DNA from: Ascoidea asiatica JCM 7603
Taxonomy: Eukaryota > Fungi > Ascomycota
DNA length: 64,000 nucleotides
NCBI GenBank assembly: GCA_001600695.1
Contig: BCKQ01000003.1
Location: forward strand, 1,556,526 to 1,620,525
Direction of reading: 5' to 3'
Positions within the stretch are counted from its first letter, which is position 1, and each line of letters starts with the position of its first letter. The notes under the pieces were generated by a model. It ran no database searches. It was not told the DNA's origin and was given only the letters and a program-made list of their open reading frames with translations. Shown one piece after another: positions 4,451 through 13,885 of the stretch. Made by a program: the position numbers and the translations under genes.

Positions 4451-7375
4451 ATGTATTATGATATGAAAGATAAAATATCAAAGTTTATAACTATATTCAA
4501 CCTTTGTTATAAAAAGTATTCATTCAGAGATAAAAATTTGTTATTAAAATTCAAAAGAAATTTTATTTCTTCAAATCATATTATTTCAATATTCATAATT
4601 TCAATATTATCAACTTTTGGATTTTCTTCATATATAATAATTAAAAAACTTATCAATATAATTCAAGAAAAAAGACAATTTAGAAAATTAAATTTTTTAA
4701 ATCAACTTAATCATCAAAATCAATTATTTGAAAAAAATGAAACCAATGAAAGTTCAAATACAATCAATGATATTAGTTTGAATCATAAATATAATTTAAA
4801 TCATAGGTATAATTTAAATAATACTAAAAATAAAAATAAATTAAAAAATAGAAGTAGAAGTAAGTTTGATTTAAGATCTTACAGTTTCATTGGTTTCAAT
4901 TCAAGACCAGTAACCTCAAATAATACTAGAGAATTATTAATTACAAATGAAAAAAATCAAACAATTAAAAAAATTTTCATCAATTCTGTCTCGAAGGATA
5001 TTTTTGATAAAGATAGATTAGTTTTCAAGAATTTCAATCTAACTTATAACAATTATAATTTTAATAATTTTAATAATAAAAAAAGTTTAATTAATTTCAA
5101 ACTATTAAGTAAATTATATATATTATGGCAAATTTTAATACCAAAATTCTTAAATAAAAATTCTTACCTTTTGATTTTGAATATTTTATTCTTAATTTCA
5201 AGAACTTATCTTTCTTTATTAATAACTAAATTAGATGGTCAAATTGTTAAAGATATTATTGGCTCAAACTTGTCTAATTTTATAATTGACTTAATATATT
5301 GGTTTTTAATTTCTTTTCCAGCTTCTTATATCAATTCTTCTATCAAATATTTAACAAAAAGATTAGCTTTGAATTTCAGAACAAATTTAATCAGATATAT
5401 TCATGATATTTATTTGAATGATAAAATGGTTTTTTATAAAATTTTATTTTTAATTAAAATTCAAAATCAAAAAGATCAAAAAGATCATAAAGATCCTCCT
5501 ATTTCAAAAAAATTTATAAATAATAAGATTAAAGACTCAATTATAAATGATTCTCTTTCAAATTCAAATATTCAAAGTATAGATGATTTAACTCAATTTA
5601 TAACTAATGATGTAACTAAATTTTCTGATACAATTGCTTCTCTTTTTTCAAATTTAGGTAAACCGATTATGGACATTTTCTTTTTTGCAATATATCTAAG
5701 AGATAATTTAGGTACAATGGGTATAATTGGTTTATTTATAAACTATATCTTAACTGCATATATTTTAAAAAGAAATACTCCAAATTTTAGTAAATTAATC
5801 AATGAAAAACAAAATCTTGAAAGTAAATACTATAACTATCATTTAAATTTAATGAATAATTCCGAGGAAATTTCTCTTTATAATGGAATAAAAATCGAAT
5901 CTTTAAGAATAAATATTATCTTCAATAAATTAATCAATCATATTAGTAAATATAATACTTTAAAATTCTATTATAGTTTTTTGGAAAATTACATTTTAAA
6001 ATTCACTTGGTCTGCCTCGGGTTATTTATTTGCTTCAATTCCTTTGATAACTCAATATTTAATATCTTCTTCGATTTCAAAAGCTGGTGGTAAAAGTGAA
6101 ACTAAAATTATTGGAAAAACTGTTAAAAGCGAAAACAAAGTTTCAATGCAATCAAAAAATATGAGACAATTTATAATTAATAAAAGATTAATGTTGTCAG
6201 TTGCTGATGCTGGAAGTAGATTAATGTATAGTATCAAAGATATTTCTAAATTAATTGGATATACAAATAGAATATTCAATTTATTAGATTTACTTCACAA
6301 AGCTCATTCTTCAAATTTCAATTATGGTGATAAATATGGTAATGATATAAAGGGAACAGTTCAAAATGATTATCCAGGATTAAGATTAGAACAAGCGCCT
6401 GTAATTATTCCATCTCAATCGGGTTCTGATGGAGAGTGCTTAATTAAAAATTTATCTTTTCAAATAAAACCTTTTGAAAATTTATTAATTTTAGGTTTTA
6501 ATGGTTCTGGAAAGACTTCAATTCAAAGAATAGTTGCAGGATTATGGCCTTTATATAATGGATTATTATCAAAACCAAATGATAAAAATATTTTATATTT
6601 ACCTCAAAAGCCATATTTTACTGATGGTTCATTAAGAGATCAAATTATTTATCCTTTAAATGAATTTGAAATGATGGAACAAGGTTATTCTGATAATGAT
6701 TTAGTTGAAATTTTGAAAGAAGTTAAGCTAGATTATTTATTAAAACGTAACTTTGAATCAAATGATGTATCTTTAAAGATTAAAGATCCAAATGGAAAAA
6801 AAACATTAGATAATAAGATAGATAATGGTTTAAATAATTTTGACTATTATAATATGAATAATTTTAATTCTATTAAAGAATGGCAAGATTTATTAAGTGG
6901 TGGAGAAAAACAAAGAATTGGATTTGCAAGAATTTTATTTAAAAAACCAGCATTTGCAATTTTAGATGAATCAACAAATGCAATATCTAGAGATATTGAA
7001 GATAATTTATTTGAGCTTTTAAAAACTAAAAAAATAACTTTTATTACATTAAGTCATAGACCTTTGTTAATGAAATATCATGATCAAATTATAAAAATTT
7101 TAAAAGATGGAAAATGGACTATTGAATCTTCAAGTTCCGACAAAGCGATTCAATCAATTGAAAAAGAAATTCAAGAGATAGAATTAAAATTAAAACAGGT
7201 TGCAGAAATGGAAAAAAGGAAAAAAGAATTAGACTTTTTATTAAATGATGATCAAGATGATGAAAGCGATTACGATTATAATGAGACTGAAGAACAATCT
7301 AAATTTAATTTATTGGAATATGGGGATGATAGTAATGTTAGTGATTCTAGTAATTCTAGTAATATAGCTTTTTAA
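4451..7375 (+). CDS. PXA1: Peroxisomal long-chain fatty acyl-CoA ABC half-transporter (ABCD family)
   Basis: YLRDNLG, NNSEEI (EAA loop), KRLMLSVADAGSRLMYSIKDIS, Walker A GFNGSGKTS, signature LSGGEKQR and Walker B ILDEST, closely matching yeast Pxa1. Confidence 0.92.
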   Translation: MYYDMKDKISKFITIFNLCYKKYSFRDKNLLLKFKRNFISSNHIISIFIISILSTFGFSSYIIIKKLINIIQEKRQFRKLNFLNQLNHQNQLFEKNETNESSNTINDISLNHKYNLNHRYNLNNTKNKNKLKNRSRSKFDLRSYSFIGFNSRPVTSNNTRELLITNEKNQTIKKIFINSVSKDIFDKDRLVFKNFNLTYNNYNFNNFNNKKSLINFKLLSKLYILWQILIPKFLNKNSYLLILNILFLISRTYLSLLITKLDGQIVKDIIGSNLSNFIIDLIYWFLISFPASYINSSIKYLTKRLALNFRTNLIRYIHDIYLNDKMVFYKILFLIKIQNQKDQKDHKDPPISKKFINNKIKDSIINDSLSNSNIQSIDDLTQFITNDVTKFSDTIASLFSNLGKPIMDIFFFAIYLRDNLGTMGIIGLFINYILTAYILKRNTPNFSKLINEKQNLESKYYNYHLNLMNNSEEISLYNGIKIESLRINIIFNKLINHISKYNTLKFYYSFLENYILKFTWSASGYLFASIPLITQYLISSSISKAGGKSETKIIGKTVKSENKVSMQSKNMRQFIINKRLMLSVADAGSRLMYSIKDISKLIGYTNRIFNLLDLLHKAHSSNFNYGDKYGNDIKGTVQNDYPGLRLEQAPVIIPSQSGSDGECLIKNLSFQIKPFENLLILGFNGSGKTSIQRIVAGLWPLYNGLLSKPNDKNILYLPQKPYFTDGSLRDQIIYPLNEFEMMEQGYSDNDLVEILKEVKLDYLLKRNFESNDVSLKIKDPNGKKTLDNKIDNGLNNFDYYNMNNFNSIKEWQDLLSGGEKQRIGFARILFKKPAFAILDESTNAISRDIEDNLFELLKTKKITFITLSHRPLLMKYHDQIIKILKDGKWTIESSSSDKAIQSIEKEIQEIELKLKQVAEMEKRKKELDFLLNDDQDDESDYDYNETEEQSKFNLLEYGDDSNVSDSSNSSNIAF

Positions 7376-7589
7376 GTGTGGCTTTTCAGTCTACAAAATC
7401 GTGTAAAGTAATATATATATACTGTATATAGCATGAAAAGCCTAACAAACAATTATAAAACGGTTCTAACTTGTTCAATCAGATAAAAAAAAAAGATTAT
7501 GAGTAAATTTAAACAATCGGAGGATTTATATATTATATAAATTAATAGAAAAAATTCTTTAAAAAAAAAATGAAGTAGTAAAACATTTA

Positions 7590-8453
7590 TTATACCCATG
7601 GGACTCCAATAAAAAGATCATTTTCTGAAAACCTTTCTTTTGCAAGAGAGTAATTTAATAGGTTTTTCAATTTTGGATTCGTAAGGTAATAGGAAGGAAC
7701 ACAATTAAATGGATTTCTAGAAAATTTTTTAGCTAATAGTTTCCCTGAACAACCGAATGGATCCAATTCAAATAAATGAAGAGCATTTTTATATTCTGAG
7801 TTATCGAGATCTTTGAAGAATTTGTCATTCTTAGCTTTATCTTTGTAATTTGGAACCATATCAAAACCAATATACTCTACATCACTTATAGGATATTTCA
7901 ATGCTTTGATATGATGATTTAAAAATCTAAATTTCTTAAAATTATAGCCAACTATAATTATTTTCCTTGGATAAGTATTTGTAATCTCAAAAAATCTAGC
8001 AATCGAAAACAAGACATTTTCAAAAGAATCTCTAGCAAATTCTTCTAATATAATTTTATTAATCAAAGTTTCATCCAAACATTCATCAAATACATACTCT
8101 TTTTTATTTTGTAAGATAACATTCAAATAACTAAAAGCCTCAGAAATACAACCAGCTTTTAATTTTGTTTTTCCTCCGGATATTATTAATAAGTTTCTGG
8201 AATTGTGATTCAAAGCTTTCAAAGATTCCTTGATTTGTTTAAGCCAAATCAAATTATCATAACTTTCTTTTTGAAAATCTTCCATATACCAATCATTTAA
8301 TGATTCCCCTCGGCCTGAACCTTTATAAATCCCATGACAAGGAAGTATGATCAAAGTATCGATTTCCGAGTAATACTTTTCTGTATTTATTTTGTTCGAA
8401 ATCACTTCATTTGAAGGCAAGTGTAAATCCGAAATAGTTTTGCCAGGTCCCAT
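7590..8453 (-). CDS. Conserved fungal YOR238W-like (DUF218-like) protein
   Basis: LIILPCHGIY, LIISGGKTK, ISEAFSY, EEFARDSFENVLFSIARF, DPFG and RNPF motifs. The first ATG is at 8453; the track start at 8462 is TTG. Confidence 0.7.
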   Translation of the reverse strand: MGPGKTISDLHLPSNEVISNKINTEKYYSEIDTLIILPCHGIYKGSGRGESLNDWYMEDFQKESYDNLIWLKQIKESLKALNHNSRNLLIISGGKTKLKAGCISEAFSYLNVILQNKKEYVFDECLDETLINKIILEEFARDSFENVLFSIARFFEITNTYPRKIIIVGYNFKKFRFLNHHIKALKYPISDVEYIGFDMVPNYKDKAKNDKFFKDLDNSEYKNALHLFELDPFGCSGKLLAKKFSRNPFNCVPSYYLTNPKLKNLLNYSLAKERFSENDLFIGVPWV

Positions 8454-8636
8454 TAAAGTCAATCTAAAACAGCAAAGTAAAATATTCTATAAGCCTATAA
8501 AAAAAATATAAAATCAAATCAAGCAAGCAACAATGGATTGTCTGAAATAAAATATGAAATATAATCTTTACCTTACTCTATTTTGAAATATAACTGTTAT
8601 GAGCATCGTTAGCTCTACTGCTGCACTTGCCCCAGT

Positions 8637-8642
8637 ACGCGT
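8637..8642. promoter_or_regulatory. MCB (ACGCGT) in the GC-rich patch of the divergent YOR238W-like/PWWP promoter
   Basis: Exact ACGCGT. A Reb1-like TACCCGG lies at 8654-8660. Confidence 0.35.
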
Positions 8643-8966
8643 CCAATGGGGGATACCCGGCGTCATTCCCTGAGGGCAGTAATAAAATAGAAATAGAAGT
8701 AAAACAGAAATAAATAGATAAAAGAAAAGTAAAATGGAATATTTACTGACTAAAACTTATAAATAAGGGCATAAAGCACCCAGAATTACTCAAACGGGAC
8801 TTGAGAGAACAAAATATTGATGAACTGAAAAAAATAAATATCCTTAGATATATATTCTTTTTAAATAAAATTCATCAAGTAACAAAACTTCAATATTTTT
8901 TCTGGGTTATAGAGGTGTTTTACTTAGAGCTAAAAAGCTTTTATCTAATTTAATTTTTCGTTCAAA

Positions 8967-11395
8967 ATGGTTGAAAGCAATGACTTACCTATTGGGACTA
9001 GAATATATTTAAGTGTTCCAGGGTATCCCCCTTGGCCTGCTATGGTATGTTTTTTTCATAAACTTAAATGTAATCTTAACTATTATTTGGGATTCAACTT
9101 ACTAACAACTAAGCTAATTTTCAATATATTTAGGTTATTCCTGAAACGCTTGCTAGCAAAAGTGATAAGCTTTATAAGGGAGATAATCTTTACTTCTCCT
9201 GTTTTTATAATCACAATTCTGCTGGATGGGTTAACTCAAGTAACTATATAATTTTAGATGATGAGAGGATCAGGAAACTTATAAATAAACTAGAAGAACA
9301 ACCTTCAATAAAAAAATCAAGGAAAAAATTAGAAACTAAAAATATAATAAATGGGCTAAAAGATGCATTAAAATATAAAGAAATTGATAGTTTTTACAAA
9401 TATAAGAGATTTGATACATCGGAAGAAATTTCAAGTGAAAAAGAAAATGTACAAAATAGCTCTTTAGAACAAGAGTTGAATTCTAGTGATAAAGTTGACA
9501 ATCTTAAATCTGAGCCTAAAGTAACTGAATCTCAAAAAATAAAGAAAATAACAAAAAAAGGTCAAGAAATTGAAAGAAGAAAAACTGCTTCAGTTGAAGC
9601 AGAATCAAATGTTGATCTTCAAAATCATAGAAGACAGACTTTAAATAGAAGAAGAAGTTCAAGTAGAAAACTATTTTCAAGTAAAAAATTAAGTCCAAGT
9701 AAAAATGTTTCAGAAGAAAGAGAGATTTCTGCTACACCTTCTGACAAAACTCCTAAACTTATTTCTCCCAATAAGAAAAAAGAAGAAAGTAGTACTCTAG
9801 ATAAGAAAAATAATATACTGGATAAAAAAAGGAGAATAACACTTAAATTACATTCACCCGAAATTGGACCTTTTGAAAACTCAACTCCTTTCAAAGATTC
9901 AGATCATCTTAATAATTTTGTTATTTCAAAGGAAACAACAAAATCACCTTTAAAAGAGACATCAGATCTAAAAAATATACTGGAGGGCAATTCACCAACA
10001 TTTTCAAGTCCTAATTCAATGGTGTCTATAAAAATTAAATCAGAGAGTGAAAATCAATTACTATCAGAAATAGAGTCTAGGAATAAAAATAATGATGCTG
10101 AAACTATTCATAATCAATCCAGTGAAATTTTTAACGATGAAAAAGAATTACCTAAATTCAAAATTGAAGAAGATCGTGAAAATATAAAAAAAGCTAATGG
10201 TTTAATTTCACAGAACAACAATATTACTAGAAAGAGAAAATCTAGTGTGAAACCAAAAGAAGTTCCTACTAAAAAAGCTAAAAAAAATTCGAATGAACTT
10301 TCAACTCTAGATACAAGAGAAGAAAGTTTACCCAAAAGCAGAAAAAAAACTGCTCTATTAAAAGACCAAGTTATTCATAATAAAAACGAAAAAATATCTG
10401 GGGGACGGCATTTTAATTCTCATAATATTCATCTTAAAGATTCTTATCAAAAAGTAAATGCTTTAAGGGCTAATAGATTAAATCATACTAATATCAAAAA
10501 AGAATTTTCAGATAATGAATCCATATCATTACCTATTATATCAAAGATCAAATCACCACCTGATCACAAAACTATAAAAAAAGAATCAGATGAATATAGT
10601 CCAAAGAAAAGTAAAAATAGCAATTCATCCTCAAGGGCATCATCAACTGCTGGTTTAAAAAAATTTGATAATGCCGATAACAAAAGGAAGTCCATCAGTT
10701 CTATCGATAATAACAATTTGAAAAAAATCTCCAACAAATCTAATTTACATAAAAATTCTTTTAGAAGCCCTCTATCAAATCATAAAATGCCTTCTAAAAA
10801 AATTGAAAGTCCCCTTTTTGGTAAAGCAGTTAACAAGACTCTTACAACTAAAAAGAGTAATATTGTTAAACTTAAAAATGCTCTAAAGCTTAAAAAAAAT
10901 GGTTTTAAAGATTCGGAAAATATCAAACTTGAAAGATCACCTGAATTAAGAAAAAAAAATCAAATAAAATCAAGAACATCTGAGAAGTTAGATCAAATTA
11001 ATAATGTATCTAATCTAAATTCTCACCGATATAATTTACCCAATGAATTTAGACATATATGGTCAATAAGATACAAAATGCAAAAGATTATGGAAAGTAG
11101 CGATTTAATGGGTAATAACGGAAAAGCAATGTGTGAAGAATTAGATAAGTTAGAAAAGATTCAAATGGATTTTGAATTATTTTGTTATTCTGAAATTTAT
11201 AAAATTTTGGGTGAAATTTTAATTTATAAAGAAAAGTTCCAATTTGAATCTGCTAGTAATGAAAAAATTTCACAAAGATGTCAAAAGCTTATTCTTAAAT
11301 GGAAAAACTTTATCATTTCTTTAAAAAAGAAAGAATCAAGTAAATTCAAGGAAAAGGAAGGAGAGAATGGAGCTTTGAAGCGTAAACGAGTGTAA
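8967..11395 (+). CDS. Spliced PWWP-domain chromatin protein with a C-terminal TFIIS-N/IBD-like helical domain (Pdp3/Ioc4/LEDGF-like); join(8967..9044,9134..11395), 779 aa
   Basis: Splicing joins track ORFs 8967 and 9476 in frame and gives VPGYPPWPAM|VIPE...YFSCFYNHNSAGWVNSSNY, a complete PWWP fold. The C-terminal IRYKMQK...LDKLEKIQMDFELFCYSEIYKILGEIL...CQKLILKWK resembles the TFIIS-N-like tail of Pdp3-family proteins. Confidence 0.8.
9045..9133 (+). other. Spliceosomal intron, 89 nt, phase 0
   Basis: GTATGT donor at 9045, TACTAAC branch point at 9100-9106, TAG acceptor at 9131-9133. Removal restores the reading frame. Confidence 0.92.
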
Positions 11396-12190
11396 ATTTG
11401 TTATATTTTTAGAATACATTTTTTATTTCAATTGAGGATAAAAGATTATATATAAAGTAGTTAAGTAATGTAAATTGAATATCATTAACACAAAATATGT
11501 TATAGTTACGATGTTGATGCTAACAATGATATTATTCAGTCTGAATAAATAGATTTAGAGATAGTTTTAAGGATAATTCAGGAAAAGTTCAAAAGACAGT
11601 TTAAAGAAATTTTTTTCAAAAAATGTAATTTTATAGAATAAATGAACAATCAATTAATATACGAAATAATATATGAAGTGAGAAAAACGTAGGATATTAA
11701 AGTAAGCGAAACAAAACTATTCACACAGTAGATCTAAGAATTGAAATGATTAATTAAGACTACAAATATAAACTGAAGTAAACAAAATTGTAAAAAATAA
11801 TTTCAGATAAAATAAAAAAAATTGAAAATGAAAAAAAAATGAAAACAAAATCAAATAAAATAGAATAAATTCATAGAAATTTAGTGAAAAACAATTATTA
11901 TCAAAATTCAAAGGGAGGATTAATAAGTAAATAAATAGATACATGAGTAAGTGAATAATTGAAATCAAAAAAGATCAAAGAAAAATTAAAGAAAAATCAA
12001 AGAAAAATCAAAATAAAGTAAGATAAATGAAAATAAATTAAAAGCAAACTAAAGAATAAGAAAATATATAATAATAGATTAATTTCATCAATACTGTACA
12101 AGCATATAAATACTAAAAGTAAGAATAAAAAACGATTTGAAAAAGTGAGTTAAGTTAAATTTCAGATAAAAGAAAAAAGTAAAAGCAAAG

Positions 12191-13885
12191 CTAATCTTCA
12201 TCAGAAGAAATTACAGTAACATCAGCTTTACTTTCACTTTGAACTTTACTTTTTTCTTCATCATCAATTGTTAATTTTTTTTTATCTTTTTCATTGTTAT
12301 TACCATTACCATTGATTTGAATAATTGAATTTTTCATTGAAGTTGGAGTAATAATTGAGTCTTTTGAAAAAGAACTAGTAGTTATAGAAGATTTTGGAGT
12401 TTTTGATTGAGATTGTTTTGAAGGATTTGGGCTTGAAGAAGTTTTTGGAGTTCTAGGAGATTTTCGTATTGAAGAAAAAGTTTTATTTGAAGGTGAAGAA
12501 ATTTTTGGAGTTTTATCAACAGGAGTTTTAATTGGTTCAATATCTGAATCACTAAGCTGTATGAAATCATCATTATTTTCATTAGTAACATTTTTTTTTT
12601 CAGTTTTTTTAACCCTTTGTTTTGATTTAAAATCTTCTTTAGATTCTGTATTGCTATTACTATTACTATTATTACTGATTTCTTTTTCATCATCATCATC
12701 ATCTATATCAATTACTGAGAAATCATTAGTCGGTTCTAGATGTTCACGTATTCTTTTTCTATGTCTATTTAATCTTTCTTTAGAAGGTTGAATTTTAAAT
12801 AATTTTTCAAGTTTTTCATCAATAGGAGTTTTCATATTCTTAATAGCCAGAATTGATTCTAAAATCTCACTGTCTTTAGAAACAGAATTTAGAGAAGAGT
12901 TTAGAGAAGAATTTGAAGAAGAATTTGAAGAAGACTTGGAGGCTGTTTTACTTGTACTTTTAGGTTTTGGTTTAGTTGTAGCTTTAGGTTTTGGTTTAGA
13001 TTTAGATTTAGATTTAGATATAGATTTTGATTTAGGGTTAATTGAATCTTCACTTATATGATAATCTGAGTCATTATTTGTATCAGAAGAAGAATCTGAA
13101 ATTTCAAAAAAATCTTGGGTATCAGATATTTTTGATTTTGATTTATCTTTTGATTTTTTTTCTTTTAATTTCAATTTCGCTTTTTCTTTTTCTCTTTCTT
13201 GAGATTTTTCTTTTGCTTTTAATCTTAATCTTGATCTATTTGTTGAATTTCTTAAATTTGAAGAAATTTTACTATTAATATTTTTATCATTAATATTAAT
13301 ATCAATTAATTTTAAATCATCATTTGATTTTGAATTTTCACTTGATTTTAATTTTAATAATTTTTTTTTATTTAAAATATTTAATTTTTCTTCAAGAATA
13401 TCAGATCTTGATAATATTTTAGTTTCAGAACTAATGAATTTAAATTCATCATCATCATTATTATTATTATTCTCTTTTTCGTCTTCTTCTTTTTCATTAC
13501 TTTGAGTTAATAAATCAGGATCAAATTTTTTACAATAAGAATCAAAATCATTATATTTTAAAGCAATTTTATAGGAATCAATTAATCTATTTATTTGATT
13601 ATTTTGATTATTATTTTGTAAAATTTCATGTTTTTTTAAAAAACTATTTATACTTAATTTATCTAAAATTTTTAAATTTTTTAAATTAACCCATAAATAA
13701 GTTTCATCATTAATAAAAAAAATTGGAAAAATTTTTGTTGATGGATTTGCATATTTTTTCGGAATTGGTTTTTGATCAATAATATCATTAGTTAGTTTAT
13801 CTTCTGGAATAATATAAGCTGGCCAGGGAGAATAACCAATTACACTAGCTAAGACTAAATCTCCAGGTTTGAACTGTTTAGTCAT
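12191..13885 (-). CDS. PWWP-domain protein (Ioc4/Pdp3-like N-terminus) with a long disordered Ser/Lys/acidic tail
   Basis: MTKQFKPGDLVLASVIGYSPWPAYIIP...FFINDETYLWVNLKNLKIL is a PWWP domain. No folded C-terminal domain is apparent. Confidence 0.82.
   Translation of the reverse strand: MTKQFKPGDLVLASVIGYSPWPAYIIPEDKLTNDIIDQKPIPKKYANPSTKIFPIFFINDETYLWVNLKNLKILDKLSINSFLKKHEILQNNNQNNQINRLIDSYKIALKYNDFDSYCKKFDPDLLTQSNEKEEDEKENNNNNDDDEFKFISSETKILSRSDILEEKLNILNKKKLLKLKSSENSKSNDDLKLIDININDKNINSKISSNLRNSTNRSRLRLKAKEKSQEREKEKAKLKLKEKKSKDKSKSKISDTQDFFEISDSSSDTNNDSDYHISEDSINPKSKSISKSKSKSKPKPKATTKPKPKSTSKTASKSSSNSSSNSSLNSSLNSVSKDSEILESILAIKNMKTPIDEKLEKLFKIQPSKERLNRHRKRIREHLEPTNDFSVIDIDDDDDEKEISNNSNSNSNTESKEDFKSKQRVKKTEKKNVTNENNDDFIQLSDSDIEPIKTPVDKTPKISSPSNKTFSSIRKSPRTPKTSSSPNPSKQSQSKTPKSSITTSSFSKDSIITPTSMKNSIIQINGNGNNNEKDKKKLTIDDEEKSKVQSESKADVTVISSDED

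Follow-up and report, generated by a model that had tools for sequence, protein, structure and literature searches.

Two genes for PWWP-domain proteins lie tail to tail on contig BCKQ01000003.1 of Ascoidea asiatica JCM 7603, within a 64,000-nt stretch of DNA that is called the window here and in which all positions are numbered. The genome consists of 20.3 Mb in 71 contigs, and the locus is very AT-rich (GC content 15-29%), with intron signals of the budding-yeast type. The stop codons of the two genes, referred to as A (+ strand) and B (- strand), are separated by 795 bp, in agreement with a preliminary description that had placed two convergent PWWP genes about 800 bp apart. That description went on to propose that a duplicated PWWP reader had split into a scaffold modified at several sites by the small ubiquitin-like modifier (SUMO) and a partner that binds poly-SUMO through multiple SUMO-interacting motifs (SIMs). 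The original observation is confirmed, and the SUMO-SIM interpretation is partly supported. The reading that we consider probable is that A and B belong to an expanded family of PWWP chromatin readers and diverged long ago, with A of the LEDGF/HRP2 type and B an Ioc4-like protein that carries docking motifs.

Gene A is predicted to be spliced. Its first exon (8967..9044, + strand) provides 26 codons that end in GYPPWPAM, which cover strand one of the PWWP domain together with its name-giving motif. The 89-nt intron (9045..9133), with a GTATGT 5' site, a TACTAAC branch site and a TAG 3' site, interrupts the PWWP domain, and the second exon (9134..11395, including the stop codon at 11393-11395) encodes the remainder of that domain (to about nt 9430), a disordered middle rich in K, S, N and E, and a C-terminal TND. 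As read from the sequence, the reading frame continues across the intron and the joined product is 779 aa long, just as the preliminary description had it. Gene B (12191..13885, - strand) has no intron and encodes 564 aa, with coding sequence from 13885 to 12194 and a stop codon at 12191-12193; expression of both genes, like the splicing of A, is presumed from these gene models. The CTG codons (A residues 255 and 309, B residue 346) fall outside all of the motifs of A and B discussed below, so that a possible reassignment of CUG is irrelevant to the motif results.

Both proteins carry a PWWP domain, as had been claimed, and it lies at the N-terminus. The Pfam and fold searches of A were run with exon 1 and exon 2 separately, while the joined protein was used for motif counts, BLAST and the tree. 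Exon 1 alone matches PF00855 at 18.2 bits (E 0.0036), under the cut-off of 25.6 bits and with the domain divided by the intron, and the joined domain matches that of a 400-aa protein encoded on contig 6 (C6_400) with 38% identity over 112 aa (E 1e-19). By inspection, GYPPWP and the later FSCFY are candidates for the methyl-lysine cage of A. In B, the PWWP domain (13562..13864, - strand, residues 8-108) scores 48.1 bits against the same cut-off, and its N-terminal sequence MTKQFKPGDLV can be aligned without gaps to the start of human LEDGF; inspection also places Y18 and W21 of B, as candidate cage residues, at Y18 and W21 of LEDGF, with FF following in the third strand. Among structures in the PDB, the B domain matches Schizosaccharomyces pombe SPBC215.07c (E 6.6e-7), Saccharomyces cerevisiae Ioc4 (E 1e-4) and LEDGF (E 0.007).

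The claim that A ends in a domain resembling the TFIIS N-terminal and LEDGF integrase-binding domains has held up. The predicted TND/LW/IBD-like helical bundle occupies 11042..11377 (+ strand, residues about 663-774), and its Pfam core (residues 696-753, nt 11141-11314) matches PF08711, the TFIIS helical bundle/Med26 family, at 24.1-24.7 bits with a cut-off of 20.6. A single-sequence AlphaFold (AF2) model of the last 160 residues contains four confident helices within residues ~663-774. When this model was compared with the PDB by Foldseek, two entries stood out by their good probability among otherwise weak matches: human TFIIS TND (probability 0.84, TM score by target 0.68) and the integrase-binding domain of LEDGF (probability 0.69, TM 0.67). 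Alignment with VIA-align gave Z scores of 9.1-9.5 across whole LW, IBD and TND domains; for the LW domain of yeast in 7faw, for example, 81 of 84 residues aligned at 2.1 A. Bundles of helices that are unrelated reach similar Z scores, and the fold evidence is therefore taken only as support for the PF08711 call. The nearest neighbors of A exon 2 by ESM features, at scores of 0.75-0.83 that provide only a lead, are LEDGF/HRP2 clusters (PWWP plus LEDGF) and fungal and oomycete clusters with PWWP plus Med26. PDB sequence searches with the exon-2 part of the A PWWP domain and with the TND returned nothing, and a fold search of the ESM Atlas with the TND model was uninformative.

The layout of A, with a PWWP domain, a disordered linker and a TND, is that of the LEDGF/HRP2 type, and A can be added to the PWWP-TND proteins. 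Pdp3, a subunit of the S. cerevisiae NuA3b complex that is related to NDF/GLYR1, offers a second comparison. Pdp3 binds RNA polymerase II and stimulates elongation (PMC8973848); like it, A is a PWWP protein of the budding-yeast type that would be expected on gene bodies carrying trimethylated lysine 36 of histone H3 (H3K36me3), and A falls in the non-Ioc4 group of PWWP domains. LEDGF and HRP2 are the well-studied readers that combine a PWWP domain with a TND, and their TNDs dock acidic motifs phosphorylated by CK2 (PMC9987994). Like LEDGF/p75 (PSIP1), HRP2 (HDGFL2) and the fungal, oomycete and arthropod proteins with PWWP and TFIIS-N domains, A has a PWWP domain, a long disordered linker and a five-helix bundle of the TND type. 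Unlike LEDGF and HRP2, A is much longer at 779 aa and matches only the general PF08711 family; the LEDGF-specific domain PF11467 was absent from the Pfam scan of the exon-2 open reading frame (ORF) at E values up to 1, where PF08711 alone was returned, and A lacks an AT-hook, containing no GRP or RGR motif. It also differs in that the searches found no homologue of A at the level of sequence. PF08711 is found at three loci only in this genome, A among them; four TND proteins each have been counted in the budding and fission yeast proteomes (PMC9987994).

The relationship of A and B can be judged against the other PWWP proteins of the same genome, in which intact PWWP genes number at least seven: A and B themselves, one for an 814-aa protein with two PWWP domains, one for an 894-aa protein with three, and those for proteins of 603, 400 and 1157 aa. 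The family is expanded for a yeast-type genome (loci L003, L006, L007, L011 and L012). The PWWP domain closest to that of A is C6_400, and the one closest to that of B belongs to the 1157-aa protein (C3_1157; 32% identity, E 3.5e-14). A and B share 30% identity in this domain (E 5e-9), and many other pairs are at least as close. In a maximum-likelihood tree of 11 PWWP domains, B groups with C3_1157, the 603-aa protein on contig 10 (C10_603) and a Candida oxycetoniae protein (support 85/91), and A groups weakly with C6_400; B, C3_1157 and C10_603 form the only supported PWWP clade within this genome. Constraining A and B to one clade costs 16 log-likelihood units and gives a p value of 0.036 in the approximately unbiased (AU) test. 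A common clade is thus disfavored, the domain tree gives no support to an ancient local duplication, and the proposal that A and B are a split duplicate is not supported.

The preliminary description had also named, as a case that would refute it, that the two genes are plain PDP3 and IOC4 orthologues adjacent by chance. The best Ioc4 candidate is C10_603 (L003:178-1986, contig 10, - strand, 603 aa), which matches the Ioc4 structure 7e29 at E 2e-8 in two stretches and has a 111-residue domain with a long insertion. B matches the same structure at E 1e-4 in two pieces that skip about 54 Ioc4 residues. B thus resembles Ioc4 (of the Isw1b complex) and SPBC215.07c (PDB 1h3z) in its PWWP domain, and differs from Ioc4 in lacking the long insertion; its sequence marks it as an extra member of the Ioc4-like clade rather than as plain IOC4. 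The genome encodes two ISWI ATPases. The tail of B showed no significant similarity by BLASTP to the tails of C10_603 and the C. oxycetoniae protein. A resemblance to TNDs noted by eye in the C-terminal helices of C10_603 and of the Candida protein, and in B residues 320-385, was dropped when Pfam and BLASTP proved unsupportive.

In B, no second Pfam domain was found beyond PWWP, which agrees with the earlier statement that this 564-aa protein has no TFIIS-N/IBD-like domain, and the remainder of the protein includes a tail predicted to be disordered (12194..13450, - strand) with seven SIM-like sites. These are DEFKFISSE (13424-13450), DDLKLIDIN (13295-13321, with an LKLI core at residue 191), FFEISDSSSD (13082-13111, residue 259), FSVIDIDDDDDE (12686-12721, including VIDIDDDDDE with VIDI at residue 391), FIQLSDSD (12542-12565, residue 441), LTIDDEE (12254-12274, residue 538) and VTVISSDED (12194-12220, residue 556, at the exact C-terminus), all on the - strand; the five that had been quoted before are all among them. 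In an AF2 single-sequence model of B, pLDDT (the predicted local confidence score) stays below 50 from residue 385 to the end and the motifs are predicted as coil, not helix; the model is poor even on the PWWP domain and serves only as a weak indication of disorder. S/T-P sites at residues 454-513 are interspersed with the acidic motifs. A 17-20-residue unit, K/R-T-P-K-x-S-S, is present in three copies at 12374-12515 (- strand, residues ~457-504) with spacings of 51 and 60 nt, and these copies produce a run of S/T-P sites among the acidic motifs. An origin of the motifs by recent DNA duplication was ruled out; such repeats as gene B contains resemble microsatellites within coding sequence (SKSK, poly-D and the TPK-SS units, for example).

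The motif array of B is not random. A SIM-like site was scored wherever four consecutive residues began and ended with a hydrophobic one, included three or more hydrophobic residues in total and adjoined a four-residue flank with at least three D, E or S. B has 7 such non-overlapping sites, compared with 1.2-2.0 in global shuffles and in block shuffles of 12-40 residues (P <=0.002), and A has one. Cores made up of V, I and L only number 4, against 0.75-1.4 in shuffles (P = 0.004-0.03). The genome background for motif densities was provided by 80 other ORFs of at least 250 aa each, and the 1.24 SIM-like sites per 100 aa of B are the highest density in this sample (0.23 pooled, 0.78 for the runner-up). 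Furthermore, the pattern [DE]-F-x-x-[IL]-[SD] occurs four times in B (residues 147, 258, 388 and 440), against 0.11 in shuffles and 6 occurrences in 52,371 background residues; the pattern was set after inspection, which inflates its P-value, though the excess is large. The earlier view of the tail as a multi-SIM region stands to the extent that a SIM-like array is statistically real, and is weakened by the four of seven cores that begin with F and are non-canonical for SIMs. Three cores with D/S/E flanks are of the canonical type (LKLI at 191, VIDI at 391 and VTVI at 556). A SIM reading is plausible for VIDIDDDDDE and the C-terminal VTVISSDED, and less plausible for the F-initial cores. C10_603 also carries SIM-like sites (6 vs 2.6 expected, P 0.025; for example DVILIDSEDE, GVVDIDIDDEE and KIIKLDESDNEDE), and such motifs are therefore not special to B.

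The supposed SUMO acceptor motifs of A make a less striking case. All six psi-K-x-E motifs (psi being hydrophobic) that had been listed were located between 9503 and 10933 on the + strand: LKSE at 9503, IKSE at 10034, FKIE at 10157, IKKE at 10493 and again at 10574, and IKLE at 10922, corresponding to residues 150, 327, 368, 480, 507 and 623. The disordered region contains all six, and in four cases the next 10 residues include at least two acidic ones. Counted over the whole protein, these six compare with 2.5 +/- 1.5 in global or block shuffles (P = 0.036-0.057), and the excess is gone for the relaxed pattern psi-K-x-[ED] (6 vs 3.8, P ~0.17). The density in A is 0.77 per 100 aa against 0.195 pooled, with 2 of the 80 background ORFs as dense or denser; scaled to several thousand genes, this would mean considerably more than a hundred proteins of that density. 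The description of A as a marked multi-SUMO acceptor is not supported by an excess of ~2.4-fold at P ~0.04; the comparison with shuffled sequences clearly bears out the enrichment in B and leaves that in A marginal, and "acceptor" is at most a weak label for A.

Nor is the suggested complementarity of A and B supported. B has no forward psi-K-x-E motif (P ~0.25 for E and ~0.04 for E/D), and it has four inverted E-x-K-psi motifs, against 1.3 expected. The C. oxycetoniae relative in the clade of B has 0.89 psi-K-x-E motifs per 100 aa, above the density in A. Together with the SIM-like motifs of C10_603, this argues that the contrast between acceptor and reader is not a property of the two lineages.

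In the reading that we favor, the PWWP domain of A would anchor the protein on H3K36-methylated nucleosomes, and its TND would serve as a docking site for short acidic/hydrophobic motifs in factors of chromatin or of transcription elongation. The tail of B carries four copies of a repeat composed of an acidic residue, F-x-x-[I/L] and an S/D cluster, along with two or three cores of the canonical form psi-x-psi-psi or psi-psi-x-psi, behind which come acidic/Ser runs compatible with CK2 sites. The motifs most likely dock a partner multivalently and in a way that phosphorylation can tune. A good candidate for that partner is SUMO, and TND domains and histones are others; motifs that bind TNDs, bind histones or act in transcriptional activation resemble the array as much as SIMs do. 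B can thus be viewed as an addition to the Ioc4-like clade with an unusual array of putative docking motifs.

For the SUMO version of this docking, known SIM proteins offer a comparison. In the phospho-regulated SIMs of Daxx and PML, and in those of the multi-SIM proteins RNF4 and Slx5, a core of four residues, hydrophobic in character, precedes S/D/E runs compatible with CK2 sites. The tail of B likewise has several copies of a core with S/D/E residues in one disordered region, one of them at the extreme C-terminus; unlike the multi-SIM proteins of the RNF4/Slx5 type, B has no RING or other effector domain by Pfam, and most of its cores are F-initial. One possibility, which we consider rather unlikely, is that B acts alone as a multi-SIM reader that ties SUMOylated chromatin proteins in general to H3K36-methylated nucleosomes, with no special link to A. 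The enrichment of the motifs, their position within the predicted disordered tail and the resemblance of the S-D-S-D and S-S-D-E-D flanks to the CK2 sites of known phospho-SIMs all point in this direction. On the other side, prediction of SIMs from sequence has a high false-positive rate, the commonest form of the motif (an acidic residue, F-x-x-[IL] and S/D) differs from the classical V/I/L core, and in the literature searched, SIMs are not reported for any PWWP protein of yeasts. We regard as very unlikely the more specific version in which B is a RING-less, PWWP-anchored poly-SUMO reader with CK2-tunable SIMs that ties SUMOylated factors, A included, to H3K36-methylated nucleosomes. Least probable of all is the full module of the preliminary description, in which B is the PWWP-anchored poly-SUMO reader and A its multiply SUMOylated scaffold on H3K36-methylated chromatin. 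That model can draw on the enriched SIM-like motifs of B, on VIDI+DDDDDE and VTVI+SSDED as matches to a canonical core with an acidic/phospho-Ser flank, on the disordered setting of the A motifs and on the closeness of the two genes. In human cells LEDGF/p75, whose domain order A shares, carries SUMO at K75, K250, K254 and K364, which lowers its activity on the HSP27 promoter (PMC11640333); SUMOylation of a protein with PWWP and TND domains would thus not be without parallel. The model must also accommodate the marginal excess of motifs in A, the inverted acceptor-type motifs in B, the absence of any split of roles between lineages, the non-sister relationship of the two genes and the F-initial cores; nothing except gene adjacency backs A as a SUMOylated client of B. 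A search with the Rad60-SLD family did not separate SUMO from ubiquitin.

The array might instead dock something other than SUMO, which we consider unlikely, all of its forms taken together: TND-interacting motifs (for the TND of A, TFIIS or Spn1), acidic-aromatic anchors that bind histones, or elements like those of acidic activation domains. A TND-interacting motif consists of a short hydrophobic helix (F/V/L/I) and an acidic, Ser/Thr-rich linker phosphorylated by CK2, and several may occur in series (PMC9987994). The motifs of B are composed in this way, its [DE][DE][FY] sites number three where 0.84 would be expected, and one of the three TND proteins of the genome is encoded next to it. 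Against this proposal, B contains no F-x-G-F, which is present in all known TND partners of LEDGF and HRP2 (PMC9987994), and its motifs are short and predicted as coil rather than helix. It is distinctly unlikely that the motifs lack a specific function and arose as by-products of an AT-biased coding sequence of low complexity, in which I, F, D, S, N and K are frequent. The base composition of the locus and the microsatellite-like coding repeats of the tail would fit such an origin, as would a fast-evolving lineage in which homologue searches come back nearly empty; the persistence of the enrichment in block shuffles that keep local composition, and the rank of B at the top of the ORF sample, argue against it.

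Several points weigh against the reading of A and B as anciently diverged family members with the features given above. The TND of A was called from one Pfam match barely over its cut-off and a single-sequence model, with Z scores that are unspecific. Word, exhaustive, metagenome and exact searches yielded no orthologue of A or B. The psi-K-x-E excess in A reaches P ~0.005 when the disordered middle alone is counted, a region picked post hoc. Finally, adjacency of the two genes by chance among ~6,000-7,000 genes is unlikely (by our rough expectation, ~0.01 adjacent pairs for 8 genes), and an old local duplication or a functional link is therefore possible.

If the motifs of B do bind SUMO, the protein would be a simple natural case of a single protein that reads both a histone mark and poly-SUMO. 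A dual reader of this kind, which is not known to have been described in yeasts, would offer a handle on the action of SUMO at transcribed chromatin. A, for its part, would place the LEDGF-like PWWP-TND layout in a genome of the budding-yeast type. Both proteins are sequence-level predictions from a poorly sampled, fast-evolving lineage, and are best taken as a lead rather than a result.

The homologue searches gave little. A word search with B found one match, the C. oxycetoniae PWWP protein, which is not syntenic. No homologue was found in searches with A exon 2 or with the PWWP region of B alone, an exhaustive search with the last 200 residues of A gave a single marginal low-complexity match, and a metagenome scan with B and an exact look-up of B gave no match. 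Two further organisms were covered by the same study, and comparison of their contigs with the locus brought no similarity of use.

The only other copy of A lies on contig 13 (360520-363430; loci L037, L040 and L041), in a decayed partial segmental duplicate of window 6063-10445 that is 79-87% identical. The duplicate spans the 3' part of an ABC gene resembling PXA1 and, of gene A, the 5' 60%, and ends near window 10445. In its copy of A the start codon, the GY.PWP motif of exon 1 and the signals of the intron are retained, and exon 2 has several frame-shifting indels. Two of the three lysine motifs covered by the duplicate have been lost, and since this copy is a pseudogene, their loss is uninformative on constraint. 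Both sequencing data sets of the organism itself contain the copy, at equal depth. The idea that it represents a diverged allele was rejected, as it proved to be a decayed partial duplicate. The duplicate lacks the stretch at window ~7530-8426, which belongs to a gene of 290 codons between PXA1 and gene A; the ORF of this gene, at window 7590-8462 on the - strand, has no Pfam match at E values up to 0.01.

The 795-bp, AT-rich spacer between the two stop codons (11396..12190) should hold the 3' ends of both genes, and no tRNA or noteworthy ORF was found inside it. Two stretches, window 13125-13462 within gene B and 11773-11941 within the spacer, show contig depth at 5-15x the local level in the runs of the organism itself, and matches to them also occur among the contigs of two further organisms. 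These stretches are genome-recurrent low-complexity sequence, coding for K/E/S-rich segments or resembling poly-A, and do not represent additional gene copies.

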